A stretch of 63,523 bases of DNA. Origin: Paraphysomonas bandaiensis. Lineage: Eukaryota; Protista; Chrysophyceae. The stretch is from contig CBFFRP010000505.1 of the NCBI GenBank assembly GCA_965644295.1, positions 1 through 63,523 on the forward strand, read 5' to 3'. Position 1 is the first letter of the stretch; every line of letters begins with the position of its first letter. Positions 826-54,912 of this stretch are shown piece by piece. The notes under the pieces were generated by a model. The model was not told the DNA's origin, did no database searches, and was given only the letters and a program-made list of their open reading frames with translations. Both the position numbers and the translations under genes were made by a program.

Positions 826-846
826 AGCCGCTATCAGTGATTGTGC

Positions 847-18582: not shown

Positions 18583-18593
18583 AATTATTATAG

Positions 18594-19300: not shown

Positions 19301-19951
19301 TTTGGTGCCTGTTGTAACACTATACCAGTAGAAGACCTGGACACACGGGTCTACAACGCCCGCATTCGACCCCGGGACGAAAATGATCACTCAGACTGCA
19401 TCTTCATCGATGCCTGTACAGACATCCACCCACAGGAGGAAATCCTCCTGGATTACGGAGATGGGCATCTCATCTCTCGCACAAACAAGCCACCAGATGA
19501 TGAGTGCCTCCGCATCTATAGAAAATACCTCGCAACTGTAGACGCCACAGAAGCCCACCCACCCCCACCCAGACGCTCCCCCCGCATACACCCCCCCGCC
19601 ACCCACAAACCTCGGAGAACACAGAGAACCACTCCCTCGAAAGCAAAGGCAGCGCCCCCCCGAGAGCAAGCTCGAAACCACACTCCTTCCACGTCAGCAT
19701 TCATAGATGACTCCACTGAACAATGGGCCTTCTACTCACCGTCTGGCCTCATTGCCATGACACTATATCCTTCAGAATTACAACAACTACTTGAGATCCC
19801 CAGAGAGACCGCCACCCGTAGTACTATCAAGAACCTAGTTAACACCTGCCTCAAGAATGGGGAAATATGCACCGCTAGGTCGTACACAACCGCTGAGGTC
19901 AACACAACCCCAGAAAATGGTCTCTGTGGGATAGGAGCAATTGGTCCCCTC
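19301..19951 (+). mobile_element. LINE copy D, left piece (C-terminal half of SET1, start of OTU-like 1)
   Basis: FGACCNTIP...EEILLDYG...PENGLCGIGAIGPL, then breaks at the TIR. Confidence 0.9.
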
Positions 19952-20381
19952 AAGTAAACATTATGCAAACGTGGGAATTTTACGATATTTTGGGAAATTT
20001 AGGAGTATTTAGAGTATTTAAGTAGAAATGTTAAAGAAACAATTCTATTTGTGGTATTAGGGTTAGAGACAACAAAAAATATTAATTTTATTATAATTTT
20101 AAGTCTCATAGGATGTAACAGAAGCGCCTTTTTGCTTACCAGCAACCACGTTATCTGCCCTCATACTACCACTGTCAACCCATTGATCATAATGATGCCA
20201 GCAGTCATTGCCCTACTCGTAGCTACATTGTTTCTAGCCACTTGTGATTTAATATACAACTTACGTACGATCATGAATACATTACATCATATAACTATCC
20301 TTTCACTGTATGAACAACACACACTAAGTCCATCAATATTTATCACTTTCTCACTCAAGTGAACTGTAGTTCACCCCATTG

Positions 20382-23300
20382 CCATCACACAACCAATACA
20401 CGTCATACACTTTCTCTCGGTGCACCTTGCCTGAGCATACTATATACACTCAGCTAACAGACGTAGCAGCAGTATGACTGTACAACAAAATATAGACACT
20501 GTGCAACCAATACACGTCATACACTATTGTCTCTCAGTACAACATGAGCCTCTGCATGCACTCGGCTCAAAGAGAGAATATAAGTGTAGCATAACATATA
20601 CAATATATACCCATCACACAACCAATACACGTCATACACTATCTCTCGGTGCACCCTGCCTGAGCATACTATAATATTCACTCAGCTAACACACATAGCA
20701 GCAGAATGACAGTACAACATATACCCATCATACACTATTGTTTCTCAGTACAACATGAGTCTCTTGCATGCACTCGGCTCAACGAGAGAATATAAGTGTA
20801 GCGTAACATTATACAATATATACCCATCACACAACCAATACACGTCATACACTATCTCTCGGTGGCCTGAGCATACTATAATATTCACTCAGCTAACAGA
20901 CGTAGCAGCAGTATTACTGTACAACATATACCCATCACACAACCAATACACGTCATACACTATTGTCTCTCAGTACAACATGAGTCTCTTGCCTGCACTC
21001 GGCTCAACGAGAGAATATAAGTGTAGCATAACACATACAACATACCCATCACACAACCAATACTGCCTGAGCATACTATATTCACTCAGCTAACACACGT
21101 AGCAGCAGTATTACTGTACAACATATACCCATCACACAACCAATACACGTCATACACTATTGTCTCTCAGTACAACATGAGTCTCTTGCATGCACTCGGC
21201 TCAACGAGAGAATATAAGTGTAGCATAACATATACAACATACCCATCACACAACCAATACACGTCATACACTTTCTCTCGGTGCACCTTGCCTGAGCATA
21301 CTATATACACTCAGCTAACACGCGTAGCAGCATTATTACTGTACAACATATACCCATCACACAACCAATACTCGTCATACACTATTGTTTCTCAGTACAT
21401 AAGCCTCTTGCATGCACTCGGCTTAGCAAGAGAATATAAGTGTAGCATAACATATACAACATACCCATCACACAACCAATACACGTCATACACTATTGTC
21501 TCTCAGTACAACATGAGTCTCTTGCCTGCACTCGGCTCAACGAGAGAATATAAGTGTAGCATAACACATACAACATACCCATCACACAACCAATACTGCC
21601 TGAGCATACTATATTCACTCAGCTAACACGCGTAGCAGCAGTATTACTGTACAACATATACCCATCACACAACCAATACACGTCATACACTATTGTCTCT
21701 CAGTACATAAGCCTCTTGCATGCACTCGGCTCAACGAGAGAATATAAGTGTACCATAACATATACAACATACCCATCACACAACCAATACACGTCATACA
21801 CTTTCTCTCGGTGCACCTTGCTGAGCATACTATATTCACTCAGCTAACATGCGTAGCAACAGTATGACTGTACAACATATACCCATTACACGTGATGCAC
21901 TATTGTCTCTCAGTACAACATGAGTCTCTTGCCTGCACTCGGCTCAACGAGAGAATATAAGTGTAGCATAACATATACAACATACCCATCACACAACCAA
22001 TACACGTCATACACTTTCTCTCGGTGCACCCTCCTGCCTGAGCATACTATATTCACTCAGCTAACACGCGTAGCAGCAGTATTACTGTACAACATATACC
22101 CATCACACAACCAATACACGTCATACACTATTGTCTCTCAGTACAACATGAGTCTCTTGCATGCACTCGGCTCAACGAGAGAATATAAGTGTAGCATAAC
22201 ATATACAACATACCCATCACACAACCAATACACGTCATACACTTTCTCTCGGTGCACCTTGCCTGAGCATACTATATACACTCAGCTAACAGACGTAGCA
22301 GCAGTATGACTGTACAACAAAATATAGACACTGTGCAACCAATACACGTCATACACTATTGTCTCTCAGTACAACATGAGCCTCTGCATGCACTCGGCTC
22401 AAAGAGAGAATATAAGTGTAGCATAACATATACAATATATACCCATCACACAACCAATACACGTCATACACTATCTCTCGGTGCACCCTGCCTGAGCATA
22501 CTATAATATTCACTCAGCTAACACACATAGCAGCAGAATGACAGTACAACATATACCCATCATACACTATTGTTTCTCAGTACAACATGAGTCTCTTGCA
22601 TGCACTCGGCTCAACGAGAGAATATAAGTGTAGCGTAACATTATACAATATATACCCATCACACAACCAATACACGTCATACACTATCTCTCGGTGGCCT
22701 GAGCATACTATAATATTCACTCAGCTAACAGACGTAGCAGCAGTATTACTGTACAACATATACCCATCACACAACCAATACACGTCATACACTATTGTCT
22801 CTCAGTACAACATGAGTCTCTTGCCTGCACTCGGCTCAACGAGAGAATATAAGTGTAGCATAACACATACAACATACCCATCACACAACCAATACTGCCT
22901 GAGCATACTATATTCACTCAGCTAACACACGTAGCAGCAGTATTACTGTACAACATATACCCATCACACAACCAATACACGTCATACACTATTGTCTCTC
23001 AGTACAACATGAGTCTCTTGCATGCACTCGGCTCAACGAGAGAATATAAGTGTAGCATAACATATACAACATACCCATCACACAACCAATACACGTCATA
23101 CACTTTCTCTCGGTGCACCTTGCCTGAGCATACTATATACACTCAGCTAACACGCGTAGCAGCATTATTACTGTACAACATATACCCATCACACAACCAA
23201 TACTCGTCATACACTATTGTTTCTCAGTACATAAGCCTCTTGCATGCACTCGGCTTAGCAAGAGAATATAAGTGTAGCATAACATATACAACATACCCAT

Positions 23301-26300: not shown

Positions 26301-29300
26301 AATACTGCCTGAGCATACTATATTCACTCAGCTAACACGCGTAGCAGCAGTATTACTGTACAACATATACCCATCACACAACCAATACACGTCATACACT
26401 ATTGTCTCTCAGTACAACATGAGTCTCTTGCATGCACTCGGCTCAACGAGAGAATATAAGTGTAGCATAACATATACAACATACCCATCACACAACCAAT
26501 ACACGTCATACACTTTCTCTCGGTGCACCTTGCTGAGCATACTATATTCACTCAGCTAACATGCGTAGCAACAGTATGACTGTACAACATATACCCATTA
26601 CACGTGATGCACTATTGTCTCTCAGTACAACATGAGTCTCTTGCCTGCACTCGGCTCAACGAGAGAATATAAGTGTAGCATAACATATACAACATACCCA
26701 TCACACAACCAATACACGTCATACACTTTCTCTCGGTGCACCCTCCTGCCTGAGCATACTATATTCACTCAGCTAACACGCGTAGCAGCAGTATTACTGT
26801 ACAACATATACCCATCACACAACCAATACACGTCATACACTATTGTCTCTCAGTACATAAGCCTCTTGCATGCACTCGGCTCAACGAGAGAATATAAGTG
26901 TACCATAACATATACAACATACCCATCACACAACCAATACACGTCATACACTTTCTCTCGGTGCACCTTGCTGAGCATACTATATTCACTCAGCTAACAT
27001 GCGTAGCAGCAGTATGACTGTACAACATATACCCATTACACGTGATGCACTATTGTCTCTCAGTACAACATGAGTCTCTTGCCTGCACTCGGCTCAACGA
27101 GAGAATATAAGTGTAGCATAACATATACAACATACCCATCACACAACCAATACACGTGATGCACTATTGTTTCTCAGTACAGCATGAGTCTCTTGCCTGC
27201 ACTCGGCTCAACGAGAGAATATAAGTGCAGCATAACACATACAACATACCCATCACACAACCAATACTGCCTGAGCATACTATATTCACTCAGCTAACAC
27301 ACGTAGCAGCAGTATTACTGTACAACATATACCCATCACACAACCAATACACGTCATACACTATTGTCTCTCAGTACAACATGAGTCTCTTGCATGCACT
27401 CGGCTCAACGAGAGAATATAAGTGTAGCATAACACATACAACATACCCATCACACAACCAATACTGCCTGAGCATACTATATTCACTCAGCTAACACACG
27501 TAGCAGCAGTATTACTGTACAACATATACCCATCACACAACCAATACACGTCATACACTATTGTTTCTCAGTACATAAGCCTCTTGCATGCACTCGGCTT
27601 AGCAAGAGAATATAAGTGTAGCATAACATATACAACATACCCATCACACAACCAATACACGTGATACACTATTGTTTCTCAGTACAACATGAGTCTCTTG
27701 CCTGCACTCGGCTCAACGAGAGAATATAAGTGTAGCATAACACATACAACATACCCATCACACAACCAATACACGTCATACACTTTCTCTCGGTGCACCT
27801 TGCCTGAGCATACTATATACACTCAGCTAACACGCGTAGCAGCATTATTACTGTACAACATATACCCTTCACACAACCAATACTCGTCATACACTATTGT
27901 TTCTCAGTACATAAGCCTCTTGCATGCACTCGGCTTAGCAAGAGAATATAAGTGTAGCATAACATATACAACATACCCATCACACAACCAATACACGTGA
28001 TGCACTATTGTTTCTCAGTACAACATGAGTCTCTTGCCTGCACTCGGCTCAACGAGAGAATATAAGTGTAGCATAACATATACAACATACCCATCACACA
28101 ACCAATACTGCCTGAGCATACTATATTCACTCAGCTAACACACGTAGCAGCAGTATTACTGTACAACATATACCCATCACACAACCAATACACGTCATAC
28201 ACTATTGTCTCTCAGTACAACATGAGTCTCTTGCATGCACTCGGCTCAACGAGAGAATATAAGTGTAGCATAACATATACAACATACCCATCACACAACC
28301 AATACACGTCATACACTTTCTCTCGGTGCACCCTCCTGCCTGAGCATACTATATACACTCAGCTAACACGCGTAGCAGCAGTATTACTGTACAACATATA
28401 CCCTTCACACAACCAATACTCGTCATACACTATTGTTTCTCAGTACATAAGCCTCTTGCATACACTCGGCTTAGCAAGAGAATATAAGTGTAGCATAACA
28501 TATACAACATACCCATCACACAACCAATACACGTGATACACTATTGTTTCTCAGTACAACATGAGTCTCTTGCCTGCACTCGGCTCAACGAGAGAATATA
28601 AGTGTAGCATAACACATACAACATACCCATCACACAACCAATACACGTCATACACTTTCTCTCGGTGCACCTTGCCTGAGCATACTATATACACTCAGCT
28701 AACACGCGTAGCAGCATTATTACTGTACAACATATACCCTTCACACAACCAATACTCGTCATACACTATTGTTTCTCAGTACATAAGCCTCTTGCATGCA
28801 CTCGGCTTAGCAAGAGAATATAAGTGTAGCATAACATATACAACATACCCATCACACAACCAATACACGTGATGCACTATTGTTTCTCAGTACAACATGA
28901 GTCTCTTGCCTGCACTCGGCTCAACGAGAGAATATAAGTGTAGCATAACATATACAACATACCCATCACACAACCAATACTGCCTGAGCATACTATATTC
29001 ACTCAGCTAACACACGTAGCAGCAGTATTACTGTACAACATATACCCATCACACAACCAATACACGTCATACACTATTGTCTCTCAGTACAACATGAGTC
29101 TCTTGCATGCACTCGGCTCAACGAGAGAATATAAGTGTAGCGTAACATTATACAATATATACCCATCACACAACCAATACACGTCATACACTATCTCTCG
29201 GTGGCCTGAGCATACTATAATATTCACTCAGCTAACAGACGTAGCAGCAGTATTACTGTACAACATATACCCATCACACAACCAATACACGTCATACACT

Positions 29301-32300
29301 ATTGTCTCTCAGTACAACATGAGTCTCTTGCCTGCACTCGGCTCAACGAGAGAATATAAGTGTAGCATAACATATACAACATACCCATCACACAACCAAT
29401 ACTGCCTGAGCATACTATATTCACTCATCTAACACACATAGCAGCAGAATGACAGTACAACATATACCCATCACACAACCAATACACGTCATACACTATT
29501 GTTTCTCAGTACAACATGAGTCTCTTGCATGCACTCGGCTCAACGAGAGAATATAAGTGTAGCGTAACATTATACAATATATACCCATCACACAACCAAT
29601 ACACGTCATACACTATCTCTCGGTGGCCTGAGCATACTATAATATTCACTCAGCTAACAGACGTAGCAGCAGTATTACTGTACAACATATACCCATCACA
29701 CAACCAATACACGTCATACACTATTGTCTCTCAGTACAACATGAGTCTCTTGCCTGCACTCGGCTCAACGAGAGAATATAAGTGTAGCATAACACATACA
29801 ACATACCCATCACACAACCAATACTGCCTGAGCATACTATATTCACTCAGCTAACACACGTAGCAGCAGTATTACTGTACAACATATACCCATCACACAA
29901 CCAATACACGTCATACACTATTGTCTCTCAGTACAACATGAGTCTCTTGCATGCACTCGGCTCAACGAGAGAATATAAGTGTAGCATAACACATACAACA
30001 TACCCATCACACAACCAATACACGTCATACACTTTCTCTCGGTGCACCTTGCCTGAGCATACTATATACACTCAGCTAACACGCGTAGCAGCATTATTAC
30101 TGTACAACATATACCCTTCACACAACCAATACTCGTCATACACTATTGTTTCTCAGTACATAAGCCTCTTGCATGCACTCGGCTCAGCAAGAGAATATAA
30201 GTGTAGCATAACATATACAACATACCCATCACACAACCAATACACGTGATGCACTATTGTTTCTCAGTACAACATGAGTCTCTTGCCTGCACTCGGCTCA
30301 ACGAGAGAATATAAGTGTAGCATAACACATACAACATACCCATCACACAACCAATACTGCCTGAGCATACTATATTCACTCAGCTAACACACGTAGCAGC
30401 AGTATTACTGTACAACATATACCCATCACACAACCAATACACGTCATACACTATTGTCTCTCAGTACAACATGAGTCTCTTGCATGCACTCGGCTCAACG
30501 AGAGAATATAAGTGTAGCATAACACATACAACATACCCATCACACAACCAATACACGTCATACACTTTCTCTCGGTGCACCTTGCCTGAGCATACTATAT
30601 ACACTCAGCTAACACGCGTAGCAGCATTATTACTGTACAACATATACCCTTCACACAACCAATACTCGTCATACACTATTGTTTCTCAGTACATAAGCCT
30701 CTTGCATGCACTCGGCTTAGCAAGAGAATATAAGTGTAGCATAACATATACAACATACCCATCACACAACCAATACACGTGATACACTATTGTTTCTCAG
30801 TACAACATGAGTCTCTTGCCTGCACTCGGCTCAACGAGAGAATATAAGTGTAGCATAACACATACAACATACCCATCACACAACCAATACACGTCATACA
30901 CTTTCTCTCGGTGCACCTTGCCTGAGCATACTATATACACTCAGCTAACACGCGTAGCAGCATTATTACTGTACAACATATACCCTTCACACAACCAATA
31001 CTCGTCATACACTATTGTTTCTCAGTACATAAGCCTCTTGCATGCACTCGGCTTAGCAAGAGAATATAAGTGTAGCATAACATATACAACATACCCATCA
31101 CACAACCAATACACGTGATGCACTATTGTTTCTCAGTACAACATGAGTCTCTTGCCTGCACTCGGCTCAACGAGAGAATATAAGTGTAGCATAACATATA
31201 CAACATACCCATCACACAACCAATACTGCCTGAGCATACTATATTCACTCATCTAACACACATAGCAGCAGAATGACTGTACAACATATACCCATCACAC
31301 AACCAATACACGTCATACACTATTGTCTCTCAGTACATAAGCCTCTTGCATGCACTCGGCTCAACGAGAGAATATAAGTGTAGCATAACATATACAACAT
31401 ACCCATCACACAACCAATACTGCCTGAGCATACTATATTCACTCAGCTAACACGCGTAGCAGCAGAATGACTGTACAACATATACCCATCACACAACCAA
31501 TACACGTCATACACTATTGTCTCTCAGTACAACATGAGTCTCTTGCATGCACTCGGCTCAACGAGAGAATATAAGTGTAGCGTAACCATATACAACATAC
31601 CCATCACACAACCAATACACGTCATACACTATTGTCTCTCAGTACATAAGCCTCTTGCATGCACTCGGCTCAACGAGAGAATATAAGTGTAGCATAACAT
31701 ATACAACATACCCATCACACAACCAATACACGTCATACACTTTCTCTCGGTGCACCTTGCTGAGCATACTATATTCACTCAGCTAACATGCGTAGCAGCA
31801 GTATGACTGTACAACATATACCCATTACACGTGATGCACTATTGTCTCTCAGTACAACATGAGTCTCTTGCCTGCACTCGGCTCAACGAGAGAATATAAG
31901 TGTAGCATAACATATACAACATACCCATCACACAACCAATACACGTCATACACTTTCTCTCGGTGCACCCTCCTGCCTGAGCATACTATATTCACTCAGC
32001 TAACACGCGTAGCAGCAGTATTACTGTACAACATATACCCATCACACAACCAATACACGTCATACACTATTGTCTCTCAGTACATAAGCCTCTTGCATGC
32101 ACTCGGCTCAACGAGAGAATATAAGTGTAGCATAACATATACAACATACCCATCACACAACCAATACTGCCTGAGCATACTATATTCACTCATCTAACAC
32201 ACATAGCAGCAGAATGACTGTACAACATATACCCATCACACAACCAATACACGTCATACACTATTGTCTCTCAGTACATAAGCCTCTTGCATGCACTCGG

Positions 32301-35300
32301 CTCAACGAGAGAATATAAGTGTAGCATAACATATACAACATACCCATCACACAACCAATACTGCCTGAGCATACTATATTCACTCATCTAACACGCGTAG
32401 CAGCAGAATGACTGTACAACATATACCCATCACACAACCAATACACGTCATATACACTATCTCTCGGTGCACCCTCCTGCCTGAGCATACTATATTCACT
32501 CAGCTAACACGCGTAGCAGCAGTATTACTGTACAACATATACCCATCACACAACCAATACACGTCATACACTATTGTCTCTCAGTACATAAGCCTCTTGC
32601 ATGCACTCGGCTCAACGAGAGAATATAAGTGTAGCATAACATATACAACATACCCATCACACAACCAATACTGCCTGAGCATACTATATTCACTCATCTA
32701 TCACACATAGCAGCAGAATGACTGTACAACATATACCCATCACACAACCAATACACGTCATACACTATTGTCTCTCAGTACATAAGCCTCTTGCATGCAC
32801 TCGGCTCAACGAGAGAATATAAGTGTAGCATAACATATACAACATACCCATCACACAACCAATACTGCCTGAGCATACTATATTCACTCATCTAACACGC
32901 GTAGCAGCAGAATGACTGTACAACATATACCCATCACACAACCAATACACGTCATATACACTATCTCTCGGTGCACCCTCCTGCCTGAGCATACTATATT
33001 CACTCAGCTAACACGCGTAGCAGCAGTATTACTGTACAACATATACCCATCACACAACCAATACACGTCATACACTATTGTCTCTCAGTACAACATGAGT
33101 CTCTTGCATGCACTCGGCTCAACGAGAGAATATAAGTGTAGCGTAACCATATACAACATACCCATCACACAACCAATACACGTCATACACTATTGTCTCT
33201 CAGTACATAAGCCTCTTGCATGCACTCGGCTCAACGAGAGAATATAAGTGTAGCATAACATATACAACATACCCATCACACAACCAATACACGTCATACA
33301 CTTTCTCTCGGTGCACCTTGCTGAGCATACTATATTCACTCAGCTAACATGCGTAGCAGCAGTATGACTGTACAACATATACCCATTACACGTGATGCAC
33401 TATTGTCTCTCAGTACAACATGAGTCTCTTGCCTGCACTCGGCTCAACGAGAGAATATAAGTGTAGCATAACATATACAACATACCCATCACACAACCAA
33501 TACACGTCATACACTTTCTCTCGGTGCACCCTCCTGCCTGAGCATACTATATTCACTCATCTAACACGCGTAGCAGCAGTATTACTGTACAACATATACC
33601 CATTACACGTGATGCACTATTGTCTCTCAGTACATAAGCCTCTTGCATGCACTCGGCTCAACGAGAGAATATAAGTGTAGCATAACATATACAACATACC
33701 CATCACACAACCAATACTGCATGAGCATACTATATTCACTCAGCTAACACGCGTAGCAGCAGTATTACTGTACAACATATACCCATCACACAACCAATAC
33801 ACGTCATACACTATTGTCTCTCAGTACATAAGCCTCTTGCATGCACTCGGCTCAACGAGAGAATATAAGTGTAGCATAACATATACAACATACCCATCAC
33901 ACAACCAATACACGTCATACACTTTCTCTCGGTGCACCTTGCTGAGCATACTATATTCACTCAGCTAACATGCGTAGCAGCAGTATGACTGTACAACATA
34001 TACCCATTACACGTGATGCACTATTGTCTCTCAGTACAACATGAGTCTCTTGCCTGCACTCGGCTCAACGAGAGAATATAAGTGTAGCATAACATATACA
34101 ACATACCCATCACACAACCAATACACGTCATACACTTTCTCTCGGTGCACCCTCCTGCCTGAGCATACTATATTCACTCAGCTAACACGCGTAGCAGCAG
34201 TATTACTGTACAACATATACCCATCACACAACCAATACACGTCATACACTATTGTCTCTCAGTACATAACCTCTTGCATGCACTCGGCTCAACGAGAGAA
34301 TATAAGTGTAGCATAACATATACAACATACCCATCACACAACCAATACTGCCTGAGCATACTATATTCACTCAGCTAACACGCGTAGCAGCAGTATTACT
34401 GTACAACATATACCCATCACACAACCAATACACGTCATACACTATTGTCTCTCAGTACATAAGCCTCTTGCATGCACTCGGCTCAACGAGAGAATATAAG
34501 TGTAGCATAACATATACAACATACCCATCACACAACCAATACACGTCATACACTTTCTCTCGGTGCACCTTGCTGAGCATACTATATTCACTCAGCTAAC
34601 ATGCGTAGCAGCAGTATGACTGTACAACATATACCCATTACACGTGATGCACTATTGTCTCTCAGTACAACATGAGTCTCTTGCCTGCACTCGGCTCAAC
34701 GAGAGAATATAAGTGTAGCATAACATATACAACATACCCATCACACAACCAATACACGTCATACACTTTCTCTCGGTGCACCCTCCTGCCTGAGCATACT
34801 ATATTCACTCATCTAACACGCGTAGCAGCAGTATTACTGTACAACATATACCCATCACACAACCAATACACGTCATACACTATTGTCTCTCAGTACATAA
34901 GCCTCTTTCATGCACTCGGCTCAACGAGAGAATATAAGTGTAGCATAACATATACAACATACCCATCACACAACCAATACTGCCTGAGCATACTATATTC
35001 ACTCATCTAACACGCGTAGCAGCAGAATGACTGTACAACATATACCCATCACACAACCAATACACGTCATACACTATTGTCTCTCAGTACATAAGCCTCT
35101 TACATGCACTCGGCTCAACGAGAGAATATAAGTGTAGCATAACATATACAACATACCCATCACACAACCAATACTGCCTGAGCATACTATATTCACTCAT
35201 CTAACACGCGTAGCAGCAGAATGACTGTACAACATATACCCATCACACAACCAATACACGTCATATACACTATCTCTCGGTGCACCCTCCTGCCTGAGCA

Positions 35301-38300: not shown

Positions 38301-41300
38301 GTCATACACTTTCTCTCGGTGCACCTTGCTGAGCATACTATATTCACTCAGCTAACACGCGTAGCAGCAGTATTACTGTACAACATATACCCATCACACA
38401 ACCAATACACGTCATACACTATTGTCTCTCAGTACAACATGAGTCTCTTGCATGCACTCGGCTCAACGAGAGAATATAAGTGTAGCGTAACCATATACAA
38501 CATACCCATCACACAACCAATACACGTCATACACTATTGTTTCTCAGTACATAAGCCTCTTGCATGCACTCGGCTCAACGAGAGAATATAAGTGTAGCAT
38601 AACATATACAACATACCCATCACACAACCAATACACGTCATACACTTTCTCTCGGTGCACCTTGCTGAGCATACTATATTCACTCAGCTAACATGCGTAG
38701 CAGCAGTATTACTGTACAACATATACCCATTACACGTGATTCACTATTGTCTCTCAGTACATATGCCTCTTGCATGCACTCGGCTCAACGAGAGAATATA
38801 AGTGTAGCATAACATATACAACATACCCATCACACAACCAATACACGTCATACACTTTCTCTCGGTGCACCCTGCCTGAGCATACTATATTCACTCAGCT
38901 AACACGCGTAGCAGCAGTATGACTGTACAACATATACCCATCACACAACCAATACACGTCATACACTATTGTCTCTCAGTACATAAGCCTCTTGCATGCA
39001 CTCGGCTCAACGAGAGAATATAAGTGTAGCATAACATATACAACATACCCATCACACAACCAATACTGCCTGAGCATACTATATTCACTCATCTAACACG
39101 CGTAGCAGCAGAATGACTGTACAACATATACCCATCACACAACCAATACACGTCATATACACTATCTCTCGGTGCACCCTCCTGCCTGAGCATACTATAT
39201 TCACTCAGCTAACACGCGTAGCAGCAGTATTACTGTACAACATATACCCATCACACAACCAATACACGTCATACACTATTGTCTCTCAGTACATAAGCCT
39301 CTTGCATGCACTCGGCTCAACGAGAGAATATAAGTGTAGCATAACATATACAACATACCCATCACACAACCAATACTGCCTGAGCATACTATATTCACTC
39401 ATCTAACACGCGTAGCAGCAGTATTACTGTACAACATATACCCATCACACAACCAATACACGTCATACACTTTCTCTCGGTGCACCTTGCTGAGCATACT
39501 ATATTCACTCAGCTAACATGCGTAGCAGCAGTATGACTGTACAACATATACCCATTACACGTGATGCACTATTGTCTCTCAGTACAACATGAGTCTCTTG
39601 CCTGCACTCGGCTCAACGAGAGAATATAAGTGTAGCATAACATATACAACATACCCATCACACAACCAATACACGTCATACACTTTCTCTCGGTGCACCC
39701 TCCTGCCTGAGCATACTATATTCACTCAGCTAACATGCGTAGCAGCAGTATGACTGTACAACATATACCCATCACACAACCAATACACGTCATACACTAT
39801 TGTCTCTCAGTACATAAGCCTCTTGCATGCACTCGGCTCAACGAGAGAATATAAGTGTAGCATAACATATACAACATACCCATCACACAACCAATACTGC
39901 CTGAGCATACTATATTCACTCAGCTAACACGCGTAGCAGCAGTATTACTGTACAACATATACCCATCACACAACCAATACACGTCATACACTATTGTCTC
40001 TCAGTACATAAGCCTCTTGCATGCACTCGGCTCAACGAGAGAATATAAGTGTAGCATAACATATACAACATACCCATCACACAACCAATACTGCCTGAGC
40101 ATACTATATTCACTCATCTAACACGCGTAGCAGCAGAATGACTGTACAACATATACCCATCACACAACCAATACACGTCATACACTATTGTCTCTCAGTA
40201 CATAAGCCTCTTGCATGCACTCGGCTCAACGAGAGAATATAAGTGTAGCATAACATATACAACATACCCATCACACAACCAATACTGCCTGAGCATACTA
40301 TATTCACTCATCTAACACGCGTAGCAGCAGAATGACTGTACAACATATACCCATCACACAACCAATACACGTCATATACACTATCTCTCGGTGCACCCTC
40401 CTGCCTGAGCATACTATATTCACTCAGCTAACACGCGTAGCAGCAGTATTACTGTACAACATATACCCATCACACAACCAATACACGTCATACACTATTG
40501 TCTCTCAGTACATAAGCCTCTTGCATGCACTCGGCTCAACGAGAGAATATAAGTGTAGCATAACATATACAACATACCCATCAGACAACCAATACACGTC
40601 ATACACTTTCTCTCGGTGCACCCTGCCTGAGCATACTATATTCACTCAGCTAACACGCGTAGCAGCAGTATGACTGTACAACATATACCCATCACACAAC
40701 CAATACACGTCATACACTATTGTCTCTCAGTACATAAGCCTCTTGCATGCACTCGGCTCAACGAGAGAATATAAGTGTAGCATAACATATACAACATACC
40801 CATCACACAACCAATACTGCCTGAGCATACTATATTCACTCATCTAACACGCGTAGCAGCAGAATGACTGTACAACATATACCCATCACACAACCAATAC
40901 ACGTCATATACACTATCTCTCGGTGCACCCTCCTGCCTGAGCATACTATATTCACTCAGCTAACACGCGTAGCAGCAGTATTACTGTACAACATATACCC
41001 ATCACACAACCAATACACGTCATACACTATTGTCTCTCAGTACATAAGCCTCTTGCATGCACTCGGCTCAACGAGAGAATATAAGTGTAGCATAACATAT
41101 ACAACATACCCATCAGACAACCAATACACGTCATACACTTTCTCTCGGTGCACCCTGCCTGAGCATACTATATTCACTCAGCTAACACGCGTAGCAGCAG
41201 TATTACTGTACAACATATACCCATCACACAACCAATACACGTCATACACTATTGTCTCTCAGTACATAAGTCTCTTGCATGCACTCGGCTCAACGAGAGA

Positions 41301-47240: not shown

Positions 47241-47246
47241 CACACG

Positions 47247-47708
47247 TGTAGTTGTTCTTAAGAACAACGTATGCTCACACAAAAACAACACTGATCTATA
47301 ACGTTTTAAAAAAATTTTAAGTGCACGCCAGCGGGCTGCTACACTGTTGAACTCACCAGCGGGTGATGCTCCTCAACTCAGACGCAAACCGCGAAAGAAT
47401 TTAAATAAATCGTTATTTAAAACGTTATATAGAAAAGTGAGTAACACTGCTATACAACTCTACAGTAACACACACATACAACATCATGTTCAGCATTTCA
47501 CTTCAGCACACAACACACCAGATCAGAAGTATTTTATCCGGTACGTATGTACAGCTTCAACACTCCGTGTATACACTGAAAGAGTAGAAACTGAATATGT
47601 AACTGAAAACTGAAAATACAAAAACACTCTGTACGTGTTAGAGAGTACAACAGAAGAGTAACATATAATACTACTACCAACGCAGAAAATAACCAGTACT
47701 GCGTTACA
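47247..47708 (-). repeat. 3' LTR (462 bp)
   Basis: One substitution seen versus the 5' LTR (AAAAAATTT vs AAAAGATTT). Confidence 0.95.
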
Positions 47709-47711
47709 CTA

Positions 47712-47725
47712 CCCTCTTTCCCCCC
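47712..47725 (-). promoter_or_regulatory. Polypurine tract
   Basis: GGGGGGAAAGAGGG 3 nt upstream of the 3' LTR on the minus strand. Confidence 0.9.
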
Positions 47726-47938
47726 AGCTGGAGAAATTAGATTGTGAATACAGACTGTGATTCTTGTATGCAAATACTTAAATCGGCCATATTAGATAGC
47801 GTCATTCTAAGTATAAACAAACAAAATCAGATTTAAACAGATATTGAGAATAAACTAGATAGACAAGGTAGTATTATAATAGAAATAAAAGAACATTGCA
47901 AATATTATCATATAATATAATAGAAGAATAAAACCTGT

Positions 47939-50900
47939 TTACAAGAGTATATCAGGAAAACTCTTGCAAAACTCCACATCGACAAGCACCATGGTAGACG
48001 GATTGAAATCGAAGCATAGTCCATAGCAGTAAACGTCATACGCACTCCATTCATAGGTAGTGTCAAAGAGTGGGCAGTATAAATCGATGCGTAAACGGCG
48101 TTTGCCTGCCCATCGTTTATAACGGCATAATACTACATAATTTGTGACATAGCAATCCGGTAATGATAATGCGTCGTAAAAATCTGCTCCCCAAGCTCGT
48201 AGGTTGATGTACACCTTTTGGCCTGGTTGAACTCCATCAATCTGCTGTTTCCGCATTCGTAGTCGTTGTTCTTTAGCTTCCTTAGCAGAAAATAAAAGTG
48301 GAAACAACGCAGGAATGTCTTTACAATACTGCTGGAAAGCCCGTGCGGTTGCAAGATCGGAATTGTATGGAATCCACACTTGTGAATCATCACTAAATAA
48401 TACGAGAAAATCCATAGTAGATCTCTTTTCAGGATCTCCCCGATATGCCACAATCTTTCGCACTTCATACTGGTTATAGTCTACTAAAGCAATGCGAAAT
48501 GCCTCATCATGAGTACCAAAAAATGGTTTAAGCCAAGACATATGAAAGACTACCTCAAATCGCATTACAATATGTGTACAGGTGATATCTGCTTTGTACG
48601 TAGAGACAACCTCGTATGGACCTTTAAATCTAGGATATAGTTTTGACGGTTTAAATTTCGAAGAATTTGGTTGGAATAAAACAAGCTGTCCGGGTTGATA
48701 TTCCGTTAAGGTCTCCGGAGGTGTTTTGGATTTTCTCTTTGCTTGGATCTTGCGTTGGACATCACATGCAATCTCACGTATAGTTCTCAAATTCTGATTT
48801 ATAAGAGATAAATATTCCGTAGTATCAACCGAATCTGACACAGCATCTGACAATTTGAAATAAGGTTTGTCTATTGTACCAAATGTAAACTCAAAAGGTG
48901 ACAATCCCGTTTCGCTACTTATTTCATCATTCAGTATGAACTGGATTACCATATAGCACTCCGGCTCTCCCCAGCAATCTTGCAACCTTTCATCATGTAC
49001 AAGAGCACTTAGAAATCGTAATGTCTCTCTATGAGTTCTCTCCACCATGTTGGACTCATGTCTATCTGTCAAAGACATTCTGAAGCGCACACCAAACCAT
49101 TTTAACAATAACTGAACAACCTCTGCTGTAATATTCGAACCTGGGTCTGAAATTAACACTTCCGATATTCCGTACGTCACGAAATAAGAAAACAACGCTC
49201 GCGCTACTCCAACTGCCGTGTAATCAGTTGCTGGATACAGACCAACCAAACGCGATGGCAATTGCTTTACAACATGGATGCAACAATGCCCTTTCTTGTC
49301 AGGAGGAGACACAGAGAGTGTGTCAAATCCTACATAATGTCTACAATGCTCGGAGTCTAAAGCTCTGATGGGTGCCTGCAAGGAAGCGCTCATTCCCGCA
49401 TTGAACTTCTGACAAATGGGACACCGATCTATGAAATCTTGTATCACCTCTGTGGTTAACTTGTGACCTGGAAATACCTTACTCAGCTTTAACCATGTTC
49501 GTTTAACTCCATGGTGACCTATCCGACCATTGTGTACTAAGTCGAACGCCTCTTTGGGTGAACTAGGTTTAATACCTTGAGCCGCTAGTTCATCTAAAGC
49601 TGCAAGTATCTCAGCTGGGAACACTGAATAACAAGCTACATCGTCGGTTTCTGAACTCCATTCCCCTACTTGGTTAAGCTCAATAAGCTGATCATCTGGT
49701 AGTAAGTCCGTATTTTCAAACATGACTACTTCACCACATACGACACTTTCTTCTGGAAAACATTCCATACAAACAGACAATAACATAACATGAGCCACAG
49801 CCGATTCCTGATCCTTACGAGATAACCAATCAGCAAATCTATTTAATTTTCCCTTGAAGTGAAGCAAGTCGAAATTGAAATTCTGTATAAACATCCGCAT
49901 GCGTACTATTCTGTCAACAACCGAAACTTCCATCCATTTAAGATTGGCGTGATCCGTCATGATCGTGAACTTTTTACCTCTCAAATAATACGACAAGGCA
50001 TATACACAAAAGAATATTCCAAAACACTCCTTGTCAATAGTGGACCACTTCAATGTTGGTTCCGAAAATTTCTTCGACACCATTGCAATTACTTGATAGA
50101 ATTCTTGACCATTGGCATCAATGAAAATTTGTAACAACACACCTCCACATGCATAAAACGAAGCATCTGTCATCAAGATCCATCTTAAAGAGTAGTCAGG
50201 ATGATACAGAGTAAGAGATTTTAAAATCGCCTCTTTAAATCTACTAAATTCCTCCCTGTAATTTACTTTCCAACCATTCTCATTCCAGTCAAAATTCTTC
50301 TTCGTCATGTCATGTAACTTATGAGTAAGGTCACTATATAACGGAATAAAAGGTTTAAAATATATTGCCGCTCCCAGGAATCTCTGCATTTGTTTCGTCT
50401 TATTTTTCCCTTCTGGAAATTCAATTGCAGTTACTGATAATTTTCGGGCCTCAGTTAATTGGTAAGTGTTGTCCTTACAAAGATAGCCGAAAAATTCCAC
50501 TGATGAATAGCCAAATTTGCTTTTCGACAATTTCAACACGACATTATAATAAGTACATTTTTTAATGACCTTCTTGAATTTCTCAATAGCATCCTGATAA
50601 TCATACGCTAACACCAGTAAGTTGTCAAATATCACTACCATCCACTCTGAGAATTCATTGAAAATATCAGACACTACATGCATCACAACTCCACTTGCCG
50701 GAGAAACTCCCTCTGGCATAAACTTTGGTTCGAACTGGCCCCATGGAGTTTGAACTGACAACAGTGCTGAAACTGATTCATGAAGTCTAATACCATGGAA
50801 AGCATTACATATATCTAAATCAATGAACACCTTATACCCAGCTGCTTTATGTAATTCTTTTATAACATCTGGTATGGGATAATGCGGACTTTCAATTTCT

Positions 50901-51883
50901 AAATTAACACGCCTGTAATCACCACATATTCGAATAAAAGGTTTCGTAGCCTTGGGTGCTACTACTATTGGTGATGCATAAGGACTCGTACTGGGACGAT
51001 AAAAGTATCCACACATCCTATTGAACTCCTCCTTAGTACGTTCATATAACATAGGTGGTATCCTTCTCATATTCTTTGGTTTAATTCTATCAGGAATAGT
51101 ACTTTTCACCTTTAATTTTAACTCAGGAACATGCTGAATTCCAGTCCATTCTCTAGGAACAAAGACATCAACTGCATCCTCTCTCAAAACTCTCAATATA
51201 TCAGTTTGTTGAGCGAAATCAGGATGTACTTTTGATTCTAGTTCACTAAAATATTTCTCCCTAGCCTCATCCACTGACTGTTCCAAAAATGTCACTAAAC
51301 TTCCAAAACTACATGGTTCGGGAATCATATCATCTTCCTCTGACTGTTCTGGAATTGGATTTTCCCAAGGATCACACACTGGTCCTGACGACATATATCT
51401 CCTAAGTTCGTCAATGTCTTCACCAATATTGGCAAGAATTTCTATCTCATTTAAATTAACTGATTGCTCCGCACTCAGTGATGCTTTCTTAATCATGTTC
51501 ATAAATAACTCGGAAAAATGCTCACAGATTGCCGGTAATCCTATAATAATATCCTTTGCCAAACCGTCCAAAACATACAGTGAAAGTTGTGCTTTGTAGG
51601 TCTTACCCTCATCTTCAAAAGCAATTGTAACAGGAATATATCCTTTAAGTTCAATCTGATGTCCGTCTGCTACTTTAACCCTCAACTTTTTATGTACCAT
51701 ATCTTTTAACAATTTGTCCCCACACTTCTTAACAAAATTTGATGAAATAAAATTATCCGAAGATGATCCGGAATCAAATAAAACCATTTCCACATTAATC
51801 TTATCACCACAATTATTTATTATCATTCCTTGCCTATGTACAGCATTGCGAAATCTGCTGGAAGTATCATTGTAATCTCGCAT
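47939..51883 (-). CDS. pol: Gypsy Pol (1314 aa): protease, RT, RNase H, integrase, GPY, chromodomain-like, C-terminal extension
   Basis: LFDSGS; RICGDYRRVN, DLDICNAF, MPEG, IFDN; TDAS, DKE, TDH; H..GHHG..CPIC, SDPGS, VER; KGPYEV; YEVRKIVAYR...FLVLF...VWIP. Confidence 0.96.
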   Translation of the reverse strand: MRDYNDTSSRFRNAVHRQGMIINNCGDKINVEMVLFDSGSSSDNFISSNFVKKCGDKLLKDMVHKKLRVKVADGHQIELKGYIPVTIAFEDEGKTYKAQLSLYVLDGLAKDIIIGLPAICEHFSELFMNMIKKASLSAEQSVNLNEIEILANIGEDIDELRRYMSSGPVCDPWENPIPEQSEEDDMIPEPCSFGSLVTFLEQSVDEAREKYFSELESKVHPDFAQQTDILRVLREDAVDVFVPREWTGIQHVPELKLKVKSTIPDRIKPKNMRRIPPMLYERTKEEFNRMCGYFYRPSTSPYASPIVVAPKATKPFIRICGDYRRVNLEIESPHYPIPDVIKELHKAAGYKVFIDLDICNAFHGIRLHESVSALLSVQTPWGQFEPKFMPEGVSPASGVVMHVVSDIFNEFSEWMVVIFDNLLVLAYDYQDAIEKFKKVIKKCTYYNVVLKLSKSKFGYSSVEFFGYLCKDNTYQLTEARKLSVTAIEFPEGKNKTKQMQRFLGAAIYFKPFIPLYSDLTHKLHDMTKKNFDWNENGWKVNYREEFSRFKEAILKSLTLYHPDYSLRWILMTDASFYACGGVLLQIFIDANGQEFYQVIAMVSKKFSEPTLKWSTIDKECFGIFFCVYALSYYLRGKKFTIMTDHANLKWMEVSVVDRIVRMRMFIQNFNFDLLHFKGKLNRFADWLSRKDQESAVAHVMLLSVCMECFPEESVVCGEVVMFENTDLLPDDQLIELNQVGEWSSETDDVACYSVFPAEILAALDELAAQGIKPSSPKEAFDLVHNGRIGHHGVKRTWLKLSKVFPGHKLTTEVIQDFIDRCPICQKFNAGMSASLQAPIRALDSEHCRHYVGFDTLSVSPPDKKGHCCIHVVKQLPSRLVGLYPATDYTAVGVARALFSYFVTYGISEVLISDPGSNITAEVVQLLLKWFGVRFRMSLTDRHESNMVERTHRETLRFLSALVHDERLQDCWGEPECYMVIQFILNDEISSETGLSPFEFTFGTIDKPYFKLSDAVSDSVDTTEYLSLINQNLRTIREIACDVQRKIQAKRKSKTPPETLTEYQPGQLVLFQPNSSKFKPSKLYPRFKGPYEVVSTYKADITCTHIVMRFEVVFHMSWLKPFFGTHDEAFRIALVDYNQYEVRKIVAYRGDPEKRSTMDFLVLFSDDSQVWIPYNSDLATARAFQQYCKDIPALFPLLFSAKEAKEQRLRMRKQQIDGVQPGQKVYINLRAWGADFYDALSLPDCYVTNYVVLCRYKRWAGKRRLRIDLYCPLFDTTYEWSAYDVYCYGLCFDFNPSTMVLVDVEFCKSFPDILL

Positions 51884-51904
51884 AGCCGCTATCAGTGATT
51901 GTGC

Positions 51905-53521
51905 TCAAAGGTCATCCAAAGGATTGTCATCCCCTTGTTGATCCTCTTCAACATCAGGTTGATCTCTGGTAAGAATACGTACATCACCAGGACGCTTTCT
52001 ATCCCCAGGATATCTTTTCAATTGAGCTGGAGAATTACTGTATCGACGTTGAGGTGGTGCATTAATACTTGGTTTGGGCATTACTGTTAACCCCACTCTT
52101 TCAGTCATCTTCTTAAGAGCTTCCGTCAAAACAGCTTTATCATGTGAAAATTTACATGACTTATCTTTGCACCCACCATCTTGCGTCAATTCTCTAAAAC
52201 ATGGGGAAGATTTCAATACCTCAGCCGCATACAAATCTTCTTCATGTTTCAGTACGTTTTGCTCCTCATCACTAACAGATTCTGAGTCAGAAACTTGTTG
52301 CTCAATTTGGTGTAGTCGCTTATCTACCGCAGACGATTTTGTTCGAAAATTAAAACGACTTCTGAATTGATTACATTTTAACGACAAATCCCTAGTAATC
52401 TTCAACTGCTTAAAGAATTCTTTCAGAAAAGCTTTTACTGAAGGGAAATTTTCCGACCTCATGAGTCTCTTAGTAGTATCTCTCATACACGCAGGAATAA
52501 GACTCATCCACTGTTCCAACGAACCACCTCTCTTAGTCGTTACTAAAGGTATACTCTCATCAAGTTTGTTCATCTTAGCAGCCTCCTCTAAGAAATCATA
52601 CCGCTGATTGAACTTCGTTTCCAAAATACAAAGATCCTCATCAACTCGACGAAAATCCTCCAACTTGTCCATTGTTACTCTGTACGGCAAACACGATTCA
52701 AGCAACATCGAATTAAAATCCATCATATCCAAAGGTCTGAACTGATACTTCGCTGCCTCAATAACTCGCGTTACACTTGCATCTATGCATTCCAAAGGTT
52801 CAGTATAATCATCAGGATATAATTCCATCAACGTAAACCTAATCATTTCCTTAGCCCTGCCTTCCAACAATGTAAACACAGAAGGAATTGGTCCATTGTC
52901 ACGACATTTCTCAAACTCAGCAATTCGTTCCAAGAAAACCAAAAACCCATCTAAAGTAATTTCCGACAACCTTATCTCCAGGTATGAATCATCTTCTTTG
53001 GTCAACGTAACTTTAGCCTTCGGTTGACGATCAATTTCACGAAGTGCTTCCTGAATAGTCTGACGTTTAGGTCTGACCGGTGGTCGCTCCTCTTCACTCC
53101 TGAGAGCTTGAGTAGCATTCAATACACCCTCACGCACAGCATTCTCTATGCGCGTATGCAACAACTCAGGGTCAATATACTGCTGCTCACGTCGCTCAAT
53201 AGTTGCAGCTACAGGCTGTTCACCATTCCCATGACCATCTAATTTAGACTCTTCAAACGGTATCTCCGAAAGCTGATCAACTTGTATAATTTCTGAATTA
53301 GCTCTCGATGACCTTCCAGATCTCCTCTGATTGATCTCCTCAAGACTCCGTTGAACATGCTCATTGAACGCCTGTTGCTGATGAAAACGCTGCTCTATAT
53401 CACCAAAACGTTGTTCTATACCACCGAAACGCTGCTCCATATACTCACGTTGCTCACGCATATACTGCATCAAGTCTTCCAGAGTAAGCTCTGTCTTCGC
53501 ATCTCCTTCTGCAGGCTCCAT
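51905..53521 (-). CDS. gag: Gag-like protein (538 aa)
   Basis: Located between the 5' LTR and pol; CFRELTQDGGCKDKSCKFSH finger. Confidence 0.85.
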   Translation of the reverse strand: MEPAEGDAKTELTLEDLMQYMREQREYMEQRFGGIEQRFGDIEQRFHQQQAFNEHVQRSLEEINQRRSGRSSRANSEIIQVDQLSEIPFEESKLDGHGNGEQPVAATIERREQQYIDPELLHTRIENAVREGVLNATQALRSEEERPPVRPKRQTIQEALREIDRQPKAKVTLTKEDDSYLEIRLSEITLDGFLVFLERIAEFEKCRDNGPIPSVFTLLEGRAKEMIRFTLMELYPDDYTEPLECIDASVTRVIEAAKYQFRPLDMMDFNSMLLESCLPYRVTMDKLEDFRRVDEDLCILETKFNQRYDFLEEAAKMNKLDESIPLVTTKRGGSLEQWMSLIPACMRDTTKRLMRSENFPSVKAFLKEFFKQLKITRDLSLKCNQFRSRFNFRTKSSAVDKRLHQIEQQVSDSESVSDEEQNVLKHEEDLYAAEVLKSSPCFRELTQDGGCKDKSCKFSHDKAVLTEALKKMTERVGLTVMPKPSINAPPQRRYSNSPAQLKRYPGDRKRPGDVRILTRDQPDVEEDQQGDDNPLDDL

Positions 53522-53599
53522 GACTCTTAAAACAGTTCAAAGGGCTCAATAACACAATGAATGTATAATGTATTGTTCTTATCAACAGAGTAATATTAC

Positions 53600-54061
53600 T
53601 GTAGTTGTTCTTAAGAACAACGTATGCTCACACAAAAACAACACTGATCTATAACGTTTTAAAAAGATTTTAAGTGCACGCCAGCGGGCTGCTACACTGT
53701 TGAACTCACCAGCGGGTGATGCTCCTCAACTCAGACGCAAACCGCGAAAGAATTTAAATAAATCGTTATTTAAAACGTTATATAGAAAAGTGAGTAACAC
53801 TGCTATACAACTCTACAGTAACACACACATACAACATCATGTTCAGCATTTCACTTCAGCACACAACACACCAGATCAGAAGTATTTTATCCGGTACGTA
53901 TGTACAGCTTCAACACTCCGTGTATACACTGAAAGAGTAGAAACTGAATATGTAACTGAAAACTGAAAATACAAAAACACTCTGTACGTGTTAGAGAGTA
54001 CAACAGAAGAGTAACATATAATACTACTACCAACGCAGAAAATAACCAGTACTGCGTTACA
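53600..54061 (-). repeat. 5' LTR (462 bp)
   Basis: Direct repeat of 47247-47708. Confidence 0.95.
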
Positions 54062-54912
54062 CACGTGAAGCAATGCGGCCTGATCACGTTTAGACTCCTG
54101 CTCGCTAATATATGGCTGGCCGATCTACGATACAGGCGCAACAAAGCAGTGTATTAGGACAGTGTCAATCATAAGTATTGACATAATATTGACATGCACG
54201 TCATACACTACAGGTACAGTGGGAATGTACAGCTATATGCGGTTTTGCCATTAATCTAGAAAACTGGCTCACGTACAGTGATGCGAGGGCCGTCGTCTTA
54301 CACTCTAACCCAGCACAAGGCTGAGCAGAGAAGCGCGTCTTAATTGCCAGCAACAAAACTCTCGTTAAGTGCTGACAAATCCCCGTTTAGGGAGGTGCCT
54401 TTATATCTCATATCCGTGTTACCGGAGAGAAGACCTGCACCCCACTGCGCCCCCAAGACCCACTTATACCATTCAACTCACATCAGTGCGCACAGTGCTG
54501 ATCAGACACATGTGAACAGAGAGTGTGAGTTGGTAGCATGCGACACACGCAACAGACCACTTCACGCCTGAAAACTAACCTGATTAATAGTGAACAACCT
54601 TCTTCTGCTGGAGATGAGACCGCATATCAGAGGAGTCTGTGCTATGATGGTATCATGTATGTCATGTGCTGTGGTGTGAGTATGTGTGTGCTGATCTGTG
54701 CACAAGAATTCAAATATCCTCCTCACACACATACATACATACACCTCTATGCGCATAGAGTACTACTCGTGCAAACGAATACATACACAATACTGCAGCA
54801 GTATAGTATAGTACAATATACCGGTATACGAGAAATACTCCTCAAATACTCCTCAAATACTCCTAAAAACGTGGGGAAAAAAAATCCCACGATTGCATAA
54901 TGTTTACTTCTC

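Follow-up and report, generated by a model that had tools for sequence, protein, structure and literature searches.

Structure of the locus

The window, by which we mean the whole 63,523-nt stretch of Paraphysomonas bandaiensis DNA analysed here (contig C505), contains the coding frame of a giant LINE protein that is split by a block composed, from left to right, of a left arm, a satellite-like array, a Gypsy retrotransposon and a right arm (Table 1). The LINE frame stops at ...GGT CCC CTC (19951) and restarts at CTC CTC CCG (54910), with both flanks in the same frame; the upstream part is in frame with position 54913 onward and is 92% identical to positions 3690-4340 of another LINE copy found elsewhere in the window (copy A), and the downstream part is 94% identical to positions 3004-3691 of that copy. 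Copy A reads GGT CCC CTT CTC CCG without interruption. A second empty site is provided by a marine-metagenome contig that runs from position 19951 directly into CTCCCGGAATAC with one CTC fewer, the uninterrupted form of the target being ...GGTCCCCTC-CTCCCGGAA... The metagenome evidence consists of short Logan contigs of public runs, none of which spans the array; the left junction sequence is unique in the genome, and the sole contig that crosses it reaches 28 nt into the transposon side and may derive from the genome-assembly sample. Further along, an endonuclease ORF starts at 58743, after the SET-domain LINE ORF.

Table 1. Features of the LINE locus and of the block within it, by position in the window.
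Feature	Position	Strand	Description
LINE copy A	3004-4340	-	Empty target site, triplet 3689-3691
Host LINE frame upstream of insertion	19277-19951	+	ORF 19277-19957; N-terminal region of giant LINE protein
Left TSD copy	19949-19951		CTC
TIR-element block	19952-54909		34,958 bp; splits LINE reading frame
Left TIR	19952-19981	+	Begins AAGTAAAC; 28/30 complementary to 54880-54909
Left arm	19952-20381	+	430 bp; common to other copies
Subterminal motif AGGAGTATTT	20001-20010	+	One exact copy; putative protein-binding site
DUF7869 transposase relic	20099-20194	-	Last 31 codons + stop; tblastn vs L027 residues 875-905, 68% identity, E 4e-8
Satellite-like array	about 20382-47210	+	26.8 kb; ~250 monomers, types A and B, plus chimeric units
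Gypsy TSD, left copy	47243-47246		CACG
Gypsy LTR retrotransposon	47247-54062	-	6,816 bp; RT, RNase H, integrase domains (Pfam)
Gypsy LTRs	47247-47709, 53600-54062		462/463 identical; TG..CA ends
Gypsy pol	47939-51883	-
Gypsy gag-like ORF	51905-53521	-
Gypsy TSD, right copy	54063-54066		CACG
Right arm	54067-54909	+	843 bp; 92-98% identity to L006, L007, L032
Subterminal AGGAGTATTT x3, tandem	54833-54864	-	Inverted relative to left-side copy
Right TIR	54880-54909	-	Pairs with 19952-19981
Right TSD copy	54910-54912		CTC
Host LINE frame continuation	54913-58602	+	SET domain (Pfam); ORF 54961-58602, frame unchanged

The block is bounded by terminal inverted repeats (TIRs) whose initial 17 bases are identical and which agree at 24 of 25 positions, or 28 of 30 when extended to 30 nt, and these are enclosed by a CTC target site duplication (TSD). 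Outside the single left and three right copies of the subterminal motif, the window contains no further exact AGGAGTATTT. Once satellite and Gypsy are removed, about 1.3 kb (430 + 843 bp) remains, and these arms contain no transposase gene, just the 31-codon relic. The array, which measures 26.8 kb as assembled with no long reads behind the figure, is built of monomers of ~111-116 bp that are 96-97% identical to their consensus and organised in higher-order repeats; it also contains duplicated segments of 2.1-2.2 kb that share 98.6-99.2% identity. The Gypsy element follows directly on the final, degenerate monomer and borders the right arm, and its near-identical LTRs and its own CACG duplication mark it as a young element and the last insertion.

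A preliminary description of this stretch had already reported the interrupted LINE frame, the uninterrupted site in copy A (here placed at 3689-3691), the 3-bp CTC duplication, 25-bp TIRs with matching subterminal motifs, a 27-kb satellite and a transposase-free remainder of ~1.3 kb, all of which stand. One point is to be corrected: the Gypsy element is situated at the border of array and right arm and not inside the array. The order that the description gave to the events, LINE before TIR element before array growth and Gypsy, is backed by the TSD, by the two empty sites and by the Gypsy duplication and LTRs. Given the TIRs, the constant TSD, the empty site and ends in common with a transposase-coding element, the block is a non-autonomous class II (TIR) transposon.

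Related copies in the genome

Within the 62.5-Mb genome, matches to the 17-nt end word number 109, as against 0 for a reversed control, and the ends therefore belong to a real family and are not a product of chance. Perfect 3-bp TSDs flank 17 of the 18 copies read end to end, where a chance match would be expected at 1/64 per copy; their sequences are without consensus (CTC, CTA, TAT, AGT, GTT, CAA, AAA, ACC, ACT, CGG, CAT, GAA, TAG and AAT were seen). The left arm of the window copy is 96-98% identical to the arms at loci L007, L032 and L030, and 98% identical to those at L006 and L009 over the parts retained there, and the first 32 nt of the right arm have only five occurrences in the whole genome.

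In four other copies the repeat recurs, flanked by the same two arms, with lengths of 0.76 kb (C656), 1.46 kb (C355), 2.48 kb (C95) and ~14.6 kb (C599, which seemingly breaks at a contig end within the right arm), and a 594-bp family copy is without the repeat, so that array size between the common arms forms a series of 0, 0.76, 1.46, 2.48, ~14.6 and 26.8 kb. The repeat always starts immediately after left-arm position 430, and the final degenerate monomer is common to all copies read. Since the same repeat lies within the same arms in these four copies, the array is the element's own internal repeat in expanded form. A sister subfamily of the element has a 182-bp internal repeat with ~69-70% identity to that of the window.

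That the array might be unique in the genome, as could be supposed from a similarity search that skips very common words, listed short runs only and omitted even the window array, is refuted by exact-pattern counts, which found the second large array in C599. Exact 30-mers of the A type number 113 in the window, with ~50 more in contigs listed after C505, most of these probably in C599; the spacing of one marker word is 1832 and 2550 in the window array as against 1044 and 1268 in C599. Free arrays lacking transposon ends were not seen among the assembled contigs with the same word-skipping search. The earlier proposal that the satellite was seeded by a small non-autonomous transposon is supported by the four additional repeat-bearing copies.

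A candidate source of transposase

The stop codon of the transposase relic in the left arm is situated 147 nt from the terminus, the same distance as at locus L049, where a 338-aa C-terminal DUF7869 ORF ends 147 nt from an identical end. An intact DUF7869 ORF of 905 aa is present at L027, ending 136 nt from an end of the sister subfamily and accompanied by a divergent Myb gene; the left end of this element is lost, and Gypsy-derived sequence adjoins it. The sister-subfamily ends match those of the window element at 16 of 17 terminal bases, and at L001 lies a deletion derivative of the L027 element, complete from end to end. Other DUF7869 elements that begin with AAGT and are flanked by 3-bp TSDs were identified at L026 (TAT), L043 (ATT) and L048 (AAT), and a further one, L031, begins with AAGT and has flanks that do not match. 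At the exact ends of the ATT subfamily only relics of the transposase gene, and no intact gene, were found in the genome, nor was an autonomous copy of that subfamily with both ends. The DUF7869 gene beside the left arm on C139 (L030) was considered as a parent and rejected, as it belongs to another element (L026, 2947-8907) with AAGTCGATG ends and a TAT TSD.

No similarity to the autonomous element was seen in the array monomers, and an origin of the repeat from transposase or intergenic sequence is therefore not supported. As to the element itself, these sequence comparisons largely answer the superfamily question: it is an internal-deletion derivative of a two-gene element encoding a DUF7869 transposase, of the RNase-H-fold DDD/E type, and a Myb-like protein. 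A candidate for the autonomous, transposase-bearing partner asked for in the preliminary description is this DUF7869/Myb element, represented by L027 with its sister-subfamily ends and by the partial ORF of L049.

Residues D132, D213 and D252/D254 are conserved without exception across 48 sequences of DUF7869 (PF25273), and E251 almost without exception. The predicted structure of the transposase (pLDDT 84.5) has the canonical RNase-H order of strands and helices, and structure comparison gave Mos1 mariner as the closest solved fold (Z 9.0), with integrases at Z 8-8.6. A Foldseek search of the PDB returned weak matches only, and comparison of the DUF7869 profile with PDB sequences returned noise only. 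Extending the profile search to 1.8 billion proteins produced 9,389 relatives, the best 150 of which are all close DUF7869 proteins with no bridge to a named superfamily among them; an ESM Atlas feature search likewise gave no named relative, and a literature search found no mention of DUF7869.

Comparison with named superfamilies supports the earlier statement that neither CACTA nor PIF/Harbinger fits. CACTA/EnSpm termini are absent, the ends reading AAGT..., and the TWA/TNA 3-bp TSD of PIF/Harbinger is likewise absent, with no consensus in 18 duplications. Sola1 resembles the present family in its DDD-type transposase, which was for long without a Pfam family, but differs in its hallmark 4-bp AWWT duplication, as given in the passage of PMC3845634 that cites Bao et al. 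2009; this signature is absent from the window family, whose TSDs are 3 bp of any sequence. Zator elements, which are grouped with IS630-Tc1-mariner (PMC7386202), are alike in some respects, as far as they have been described: Zator-1 of amphioxus has 33-bp TIRs and 3-bp TSDs (PMC12905397), and the transposases share a compact RNase-H fold in which the second and third acidic residues are not separated by an insertion. The TSDs found here are, in contrast, without TAA/TTA bias. The profile PF07592 (ISAzo13/TP36, bacterial relatives of Zator) gave nothing above E 0.17 against the genome, and in one ESM Atlas cluster of DUF7869 proteins, 11% also match PF07592.

Discussion

Taken as a whole, we put a probability of roughly 85% on the following account: a non-autonomous copy of a DUF7869-type transposon lies in the LINE, its native repeat has been expanded, and the Gypsy element came later. 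The element inserted into the N-terminal coding part of a LINE copy, duplicating CTC; its mobilisation would be in trans, through a DUF7869 transposase of the kind encoded by the intact 905-aa gene of the sister subfamily. Between its left and right arms the family carries a tandem repeat, which in the window copy grew to ~250 monomers (26.8 kb), most likely in place, the probable mechanism being unequal exchange among monomers and higher-order units, or slippage during their replication. Insertion of the Gypsy element at the border of array and right arm followed.

The principal alternative concerns where the expansion took place. An element already holding an array of ten or more kb could have inserted here, with the C505 and C599 copies descending from one expanded ancestor and the satellite being transported rather than merely seeded. 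As two of the five complete copies are very large (26.8 and ~14.6 kb) and both large arrays share exact monomer words and variants, an already expanded element may have transposed, and the window copy has kept its two ends intact. Against this, a marker word is spaced differently in the two arrays, the near-identical 2-kb internal duplications indicate recent local growth, and the remaining complete copies hold no more than 2.5 kb of repeat; cut-and-paste movement of a 28-kb non-autonomous element is, moreover, possible but less likely. We therefore regard arrival in expanded form as unlikely, if the most serious of the competing explanations. Growth in place, to which the 98.6-99.2% identity of the 2.1-2.2-kb segments and the marker spacing unlike that of C599 both point, is the most likely course on present sequence comparisons and appears about twice as probable.

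A second possibility, which we consider distinctly improbable, is that the transposon family captured a pre-existing genomic satellite and did not generate it internally. The absence of similarity between the repeat and the autonomous element is consistent with capture, for which the Xenopus MITE miDNA4 offers a proposed precedent: according to PMC12628747, it arose when a tandem repeat that already existed was captured. However, nearly all occurrences of the repeat with known context adjoin the left arm, lie within a family copy or are the sister-subfamily repeat (locus L035, with neither arm nor end, is an exception), and the sister subfamily has a diverged homologue at the corresponding place. 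If capture occurred at all, it was ancient and is not what the window shows.

The same position of the repeat in two subfamilies whose identity has fallen to ~70% raises the thought, which we hold to be doubtful, that it is a maintained part of the lineage and not accidental cargo, and that elements with 14-27-kb arrays may have kept their mobility. Were this so, the DUF7869/Myb transposon would deliver satellite arrays, already formed, to new sites on the chromosomes, and would do so in a protist.

That the array length or the join between the contig halves is an assembly artefact (a collapsed, inflated or chimeric repeat) is very improbable: tandem arrays are prone to such error, public runs offer only short contigs and none across the array, and the C599 copy seemingly ends with its contig, but the flanks fit exactly, sharing the LINE frame, a 3-bp TSD and collinearity with copy A on both sides, which a chimeric join would not yield, and the arms match those of four other copies in order and orientation.

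Under the preferred account of expansion within a resident element, the window copy represents satellite formation caught midway, the array remaining enclosed by the two transposon ends and a TSD in a datable LINE host. It supports the existing model in which repeats inside non-autonomous transposons expand into satellites, and broadens it to include a marine protist and DUF7869, a scarcely described transposase family with a Myb partner gene. The MITE-like elements of this genome that have AAGT termini and 3-bp TSDs are thereby linked to their transposase, which helps in annotating its repeats.

Satellites that arise inside transposons are already known, from Tetris and from miDNA4, and the window copy is a clear example and not an unprecedented one. 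The Tetris foldback transposon of Drosophila virilis, with its TIR-220 satellite (PMC4079207), is likewise a non-autonomous element whose internal tandem repeats vary in copy number and yield kb-size satellite-like arrays inside the element, and it too has a related MITE with common ends and probably a common autonomous partner. The Tetris repeats, however, lie within long foldback TIRs, whereas here a central repeat lies between short ends of ~30 nt; the present element occurs in a marine protist and belongs with the DUF7869 transposase family, not with a Drosophila element, and its array is still flanked by both ends and a TSD. In miDNA4, similarly, a MITE contains the satellite unit either singly or in arrays that differ in length, and the longer internal arrays are regarded as a route to classical satellites. 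In contrast to miDNA4, which has another superfamily and TSD, the present family spans array sizes of 0 to 26.8 kb; two of its copies exceed 14 kb, and no end-free arrays were seen.

Insertion of the transposon into the host LINE

Contig C505, a complete contig of 63.5 kb in an assembly totalling 62.5 Mb in 669 contigs, carries a LINE frame that ends at 19951 with ...GGT CCC CTC, directly followed by the transposon start AAGTAAACATTATGCAA...; the transposon right end ...TTGCATAATGTTTACTT stops at 54909 and is followed by CTC CTC CCG. The second, inverted LINE copy (copy A) reads GGT CCC CTT CTC CCG, unbroken, at the target site and is collinear with both flanks (3690-4340 with 19300-19950; 3004-3691 with 54910-55597), so that the split LINE copy holds exactly one additional CTC, i.e. 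a 3-bp target duplication. Removal of the block together with one CTC places ORFs 19277-19957 and 54961-58602 in a shared frame. The break and restart of LINE coding and the CTC duplication described from the sequence alone are thus confirmed, and the claimed terminal inverted repeats and subterminal motifs are also present: a repeat finder run on the window aligned arms 19952-19981 and 54880-54909 with 28/30 positions complementary, and exact copies of the AGGAGTATTT motif lie close to both ends, one at the left and three, in inverted orientation, at the right.

In public runs, compared by way of Logan contigs, one contig of run X1 is identical to the window across 19873-19979; 79 nt of it are LINE and 28 nt are transposon, the latter falling below the 31-nt rule of the comparison tool; X1 may be the genome's source sample. 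In contigs of marine metagenome X3, 19951 is followed by CTCCCGGAATACTCTACCC, as in an uninterrupted site. Several metagenomes (marine, seawater and hydrocarbon) contain LINE and transposon-arm parts of 18400-20700, as do runs of four organisms; run X6, from one organism, holds the transposon end at a different insertion site, that known from family copy L010.

Within the host LINE family (13298-18100, 54913-63523) a SET domain precedes the endonuclease and reverse transcriptase. Copy A contains a perfect 33-nt inverted repeat (5115-5147/6303-6335, 1.2 kb spacing), a word resembling which lies at 18557-18582; the pair could represent a further small TIR element or a characteristic of the LINE end.

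Features of the window and copies of the transposon that carry the repeat
Feature	Position	Strand	Details
Left arm	19952-20381		
Transposase relic	20099-20194	-	last 31 residues + stop of the DUF7869 transposase, in the left arm; 68% identity, E 4e-8
Array	about 20382-47210		~250 units; two monomer types + chimeric units
Gypsy element	47247-54062	-	RT, RNase H, integrase domains
Right arm	54067-54909		
Second Gypsy copy, right-hand 3 kb	1-3003		99.8% identical; cut at contig start
65-bp tandem repeat	10814-11050		3.6 copies, 94% matches; between two inverted LINE copies
2,178-bp SET-to-endonuclease unit	58526-63523		head to tail ~2.3 times; 98% identity to 13298-14574
Copy in C656			repeat 0.76 kb
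Copy in C355			repeat 1.46 kb
Copy in C95			repeat 2.48 kb; duplication AAT
Copy in C599	left end 26248; repeat words 26691-39685; right arm from 41299		repeat ~14.6 kb
Copy in C505 (window)			repeat 26.8 kb, as assembled

The transposon family and its native repeat

The transposon family is real. The search for further terminal pairs proposed in the preliminary description returned 109 genome matches to a 17-nt end word at ≤1 mismatch (0 for the control), and perfect 3-bp duplications, without consensus, flank 17 of the 18 copies read end to end (window, L001-L016 and L032). Copies measure from 113 bp to 6.6 kb, the window copy excepted, and their ends define two subfamilies (AAGTAAACATT... 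versus AAGTAAACAAT...). One truncated element is present at both L033 (C426) and L034 (C460), where its flanks are reverse-complementary to each other, and these contigs are therefore probably haplotigs or duplicated contigs; the same element and flank occur twice in a 5.8-kb tandem duplication at L036 (C290).

The repeat belongs to the transposon. It begins directly after arm position 430 in every locus that keeps the left arm that far, and the right-arm start is found at only five places in the genome, all complete left-arm/repeat/right-arm copies; four copies besides the window's thus bound the repeat with the same arms, answering whether other arrays are transposon-bounded. Two copies, of 594 bp and 169 bp, lack it. 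An internal 182-bp tandem repeat of variable copy number, with ~69-70% identity to the window repeat, is present in sister-subfamily copies L002-L005 (4.4-5.7 kb), indicating that an internal tandem repeat is old in the lineage. The C599 array was revealed by exact counts of 30-mers from one monomer type, the A-type (171 in the genome versus 113 in the window), its absence from similarity-search matches reflecting that search's skipping of common words. As the left junction of the window copy is unique in the genome, the C599 copy is a separate insertion. This second large array (C599:26248-41330) apparently stops at a contig break within the right arm, and the first 547 bp of contig C512 (1-547) are the terminal part of a right arm; the two may be neighbouring contigs.

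History of the block and growth of the array

Of the proposed order of events, the sequence LINE, transposon, Gypsy is shown: the target duplication and empty site place transposon insertion after the LINE copy, and the LTR identity of 99.8% (463 bp, 1 mismatch; TG..CA ends, CACG duplication) makes the Gypsy the most recent arrival. It immediately follows the terminal degenerate monomer of the array, which is common to all sister copies that could be read; 20 bp present in the sisters at this point are absent from the window copy. A second copy of this Gypsy, inserted in LINE copy A at 3003/3004, indicates by its near-identity that the family was very recently active.

Both monomer types share a ~33-nt core, and the array has nested periods of 194, 222, 310, 336, 419-438, 533 and 1832. 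The array appears to have grown in place, and would have expanded at its present location via unequal exchange or slippage. Alternatively, with about one chance in four, an already expanded element transposed to this site: the duplicated 2.1-2.2-kb segments within the window array are near-identical (98.6-99.2%), and the marker spacing of the C599 array differs from it, both of which favour growth in place. Accordingly, of the earlier suggestion that the transposon seeded or transported the satellite, seeding accords with a repeat native to the element, and transport is the less probable part.

Transposase and superfamily

For the autonomous partner that the preliminary description had proposed to seek, a candidate transposase is the intact 905-aa ORF at L027 (C373), one of 23 places in the genome matching DUF7869 (PF25273); the ORF stops 136 nt short of a terminus of the sister subfamily, and a divergent Myb-like gene accompanies it. 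L001, complete from end to end and flanked by a CTA duplication, is a deletion derivative in which the Myb gene and parts of the transposase gene survive. At L049 (C365) a 338-aa C-terminal ORF (59% identity to L027) ends 147 nt from an exact end of the window's own ATT subfamily, and the window left arm is 81% identical to this ORF/end region. Three further DUF7869 elements of the genome have AAGT starts and 3-bp duplications; a fourth, L031, has the AAGT start, but flank comparison found no matching duplication. At L029 (C132) one DUF7869 element copy has an insertion of 1.55 kb, an element belonging to a related family (576-2129; ends AAGCAAACT..., duplication AAT), with the empty site in sisters L019 and L021.

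Across 48 aligned homologues no variation is seen at D132, D213 and D252/D254 and hardly any at E251; these acidic residues lie within the motifs DGMAQ, QIDGGSEN and GHTHEDID. In the AlphaFold model (pLDDT 84.5) strands and helices follow the canonical RNase-H order, and the third acidic residue comes directly after strand 5; among solved structures the closest are Mos1 mariner (Z 9.0 over 222 aligned residues) and Metnase, with retroviral integrases ≤1 Z unit from these best matches. A profile search of this genome for PF07592, the Pfam model of the bacterial relatives of Zator, gave no match. The element is of DUF7869 type and, on the features tested, nearer to Zator than to Sola1: Zator, placed with IS630-Tc1-mariner (PMC7386202), shares the 3-bp duplication length (PMC12905397), whereas the hallmark of Sola1, a 4-bp AWWT duplication (PMC3845634), differs from the 3 bp of this family.

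Comparison with known systems

Satellite arrays have been traced to tandem repeats within the non-autonomous DNA transposon Tetris of Drosophila virilis (PMC4079207) and likewise to those of the Xenopus MITE miDNA4, and the subject has been reviewed (PMC12628747). The window copy resembles both in that a satellite array is born from the internal repeat of a non-autonomous DNA transposon; it is a clean new example of a kind already described, from a protist host and a transposase family that is little known.
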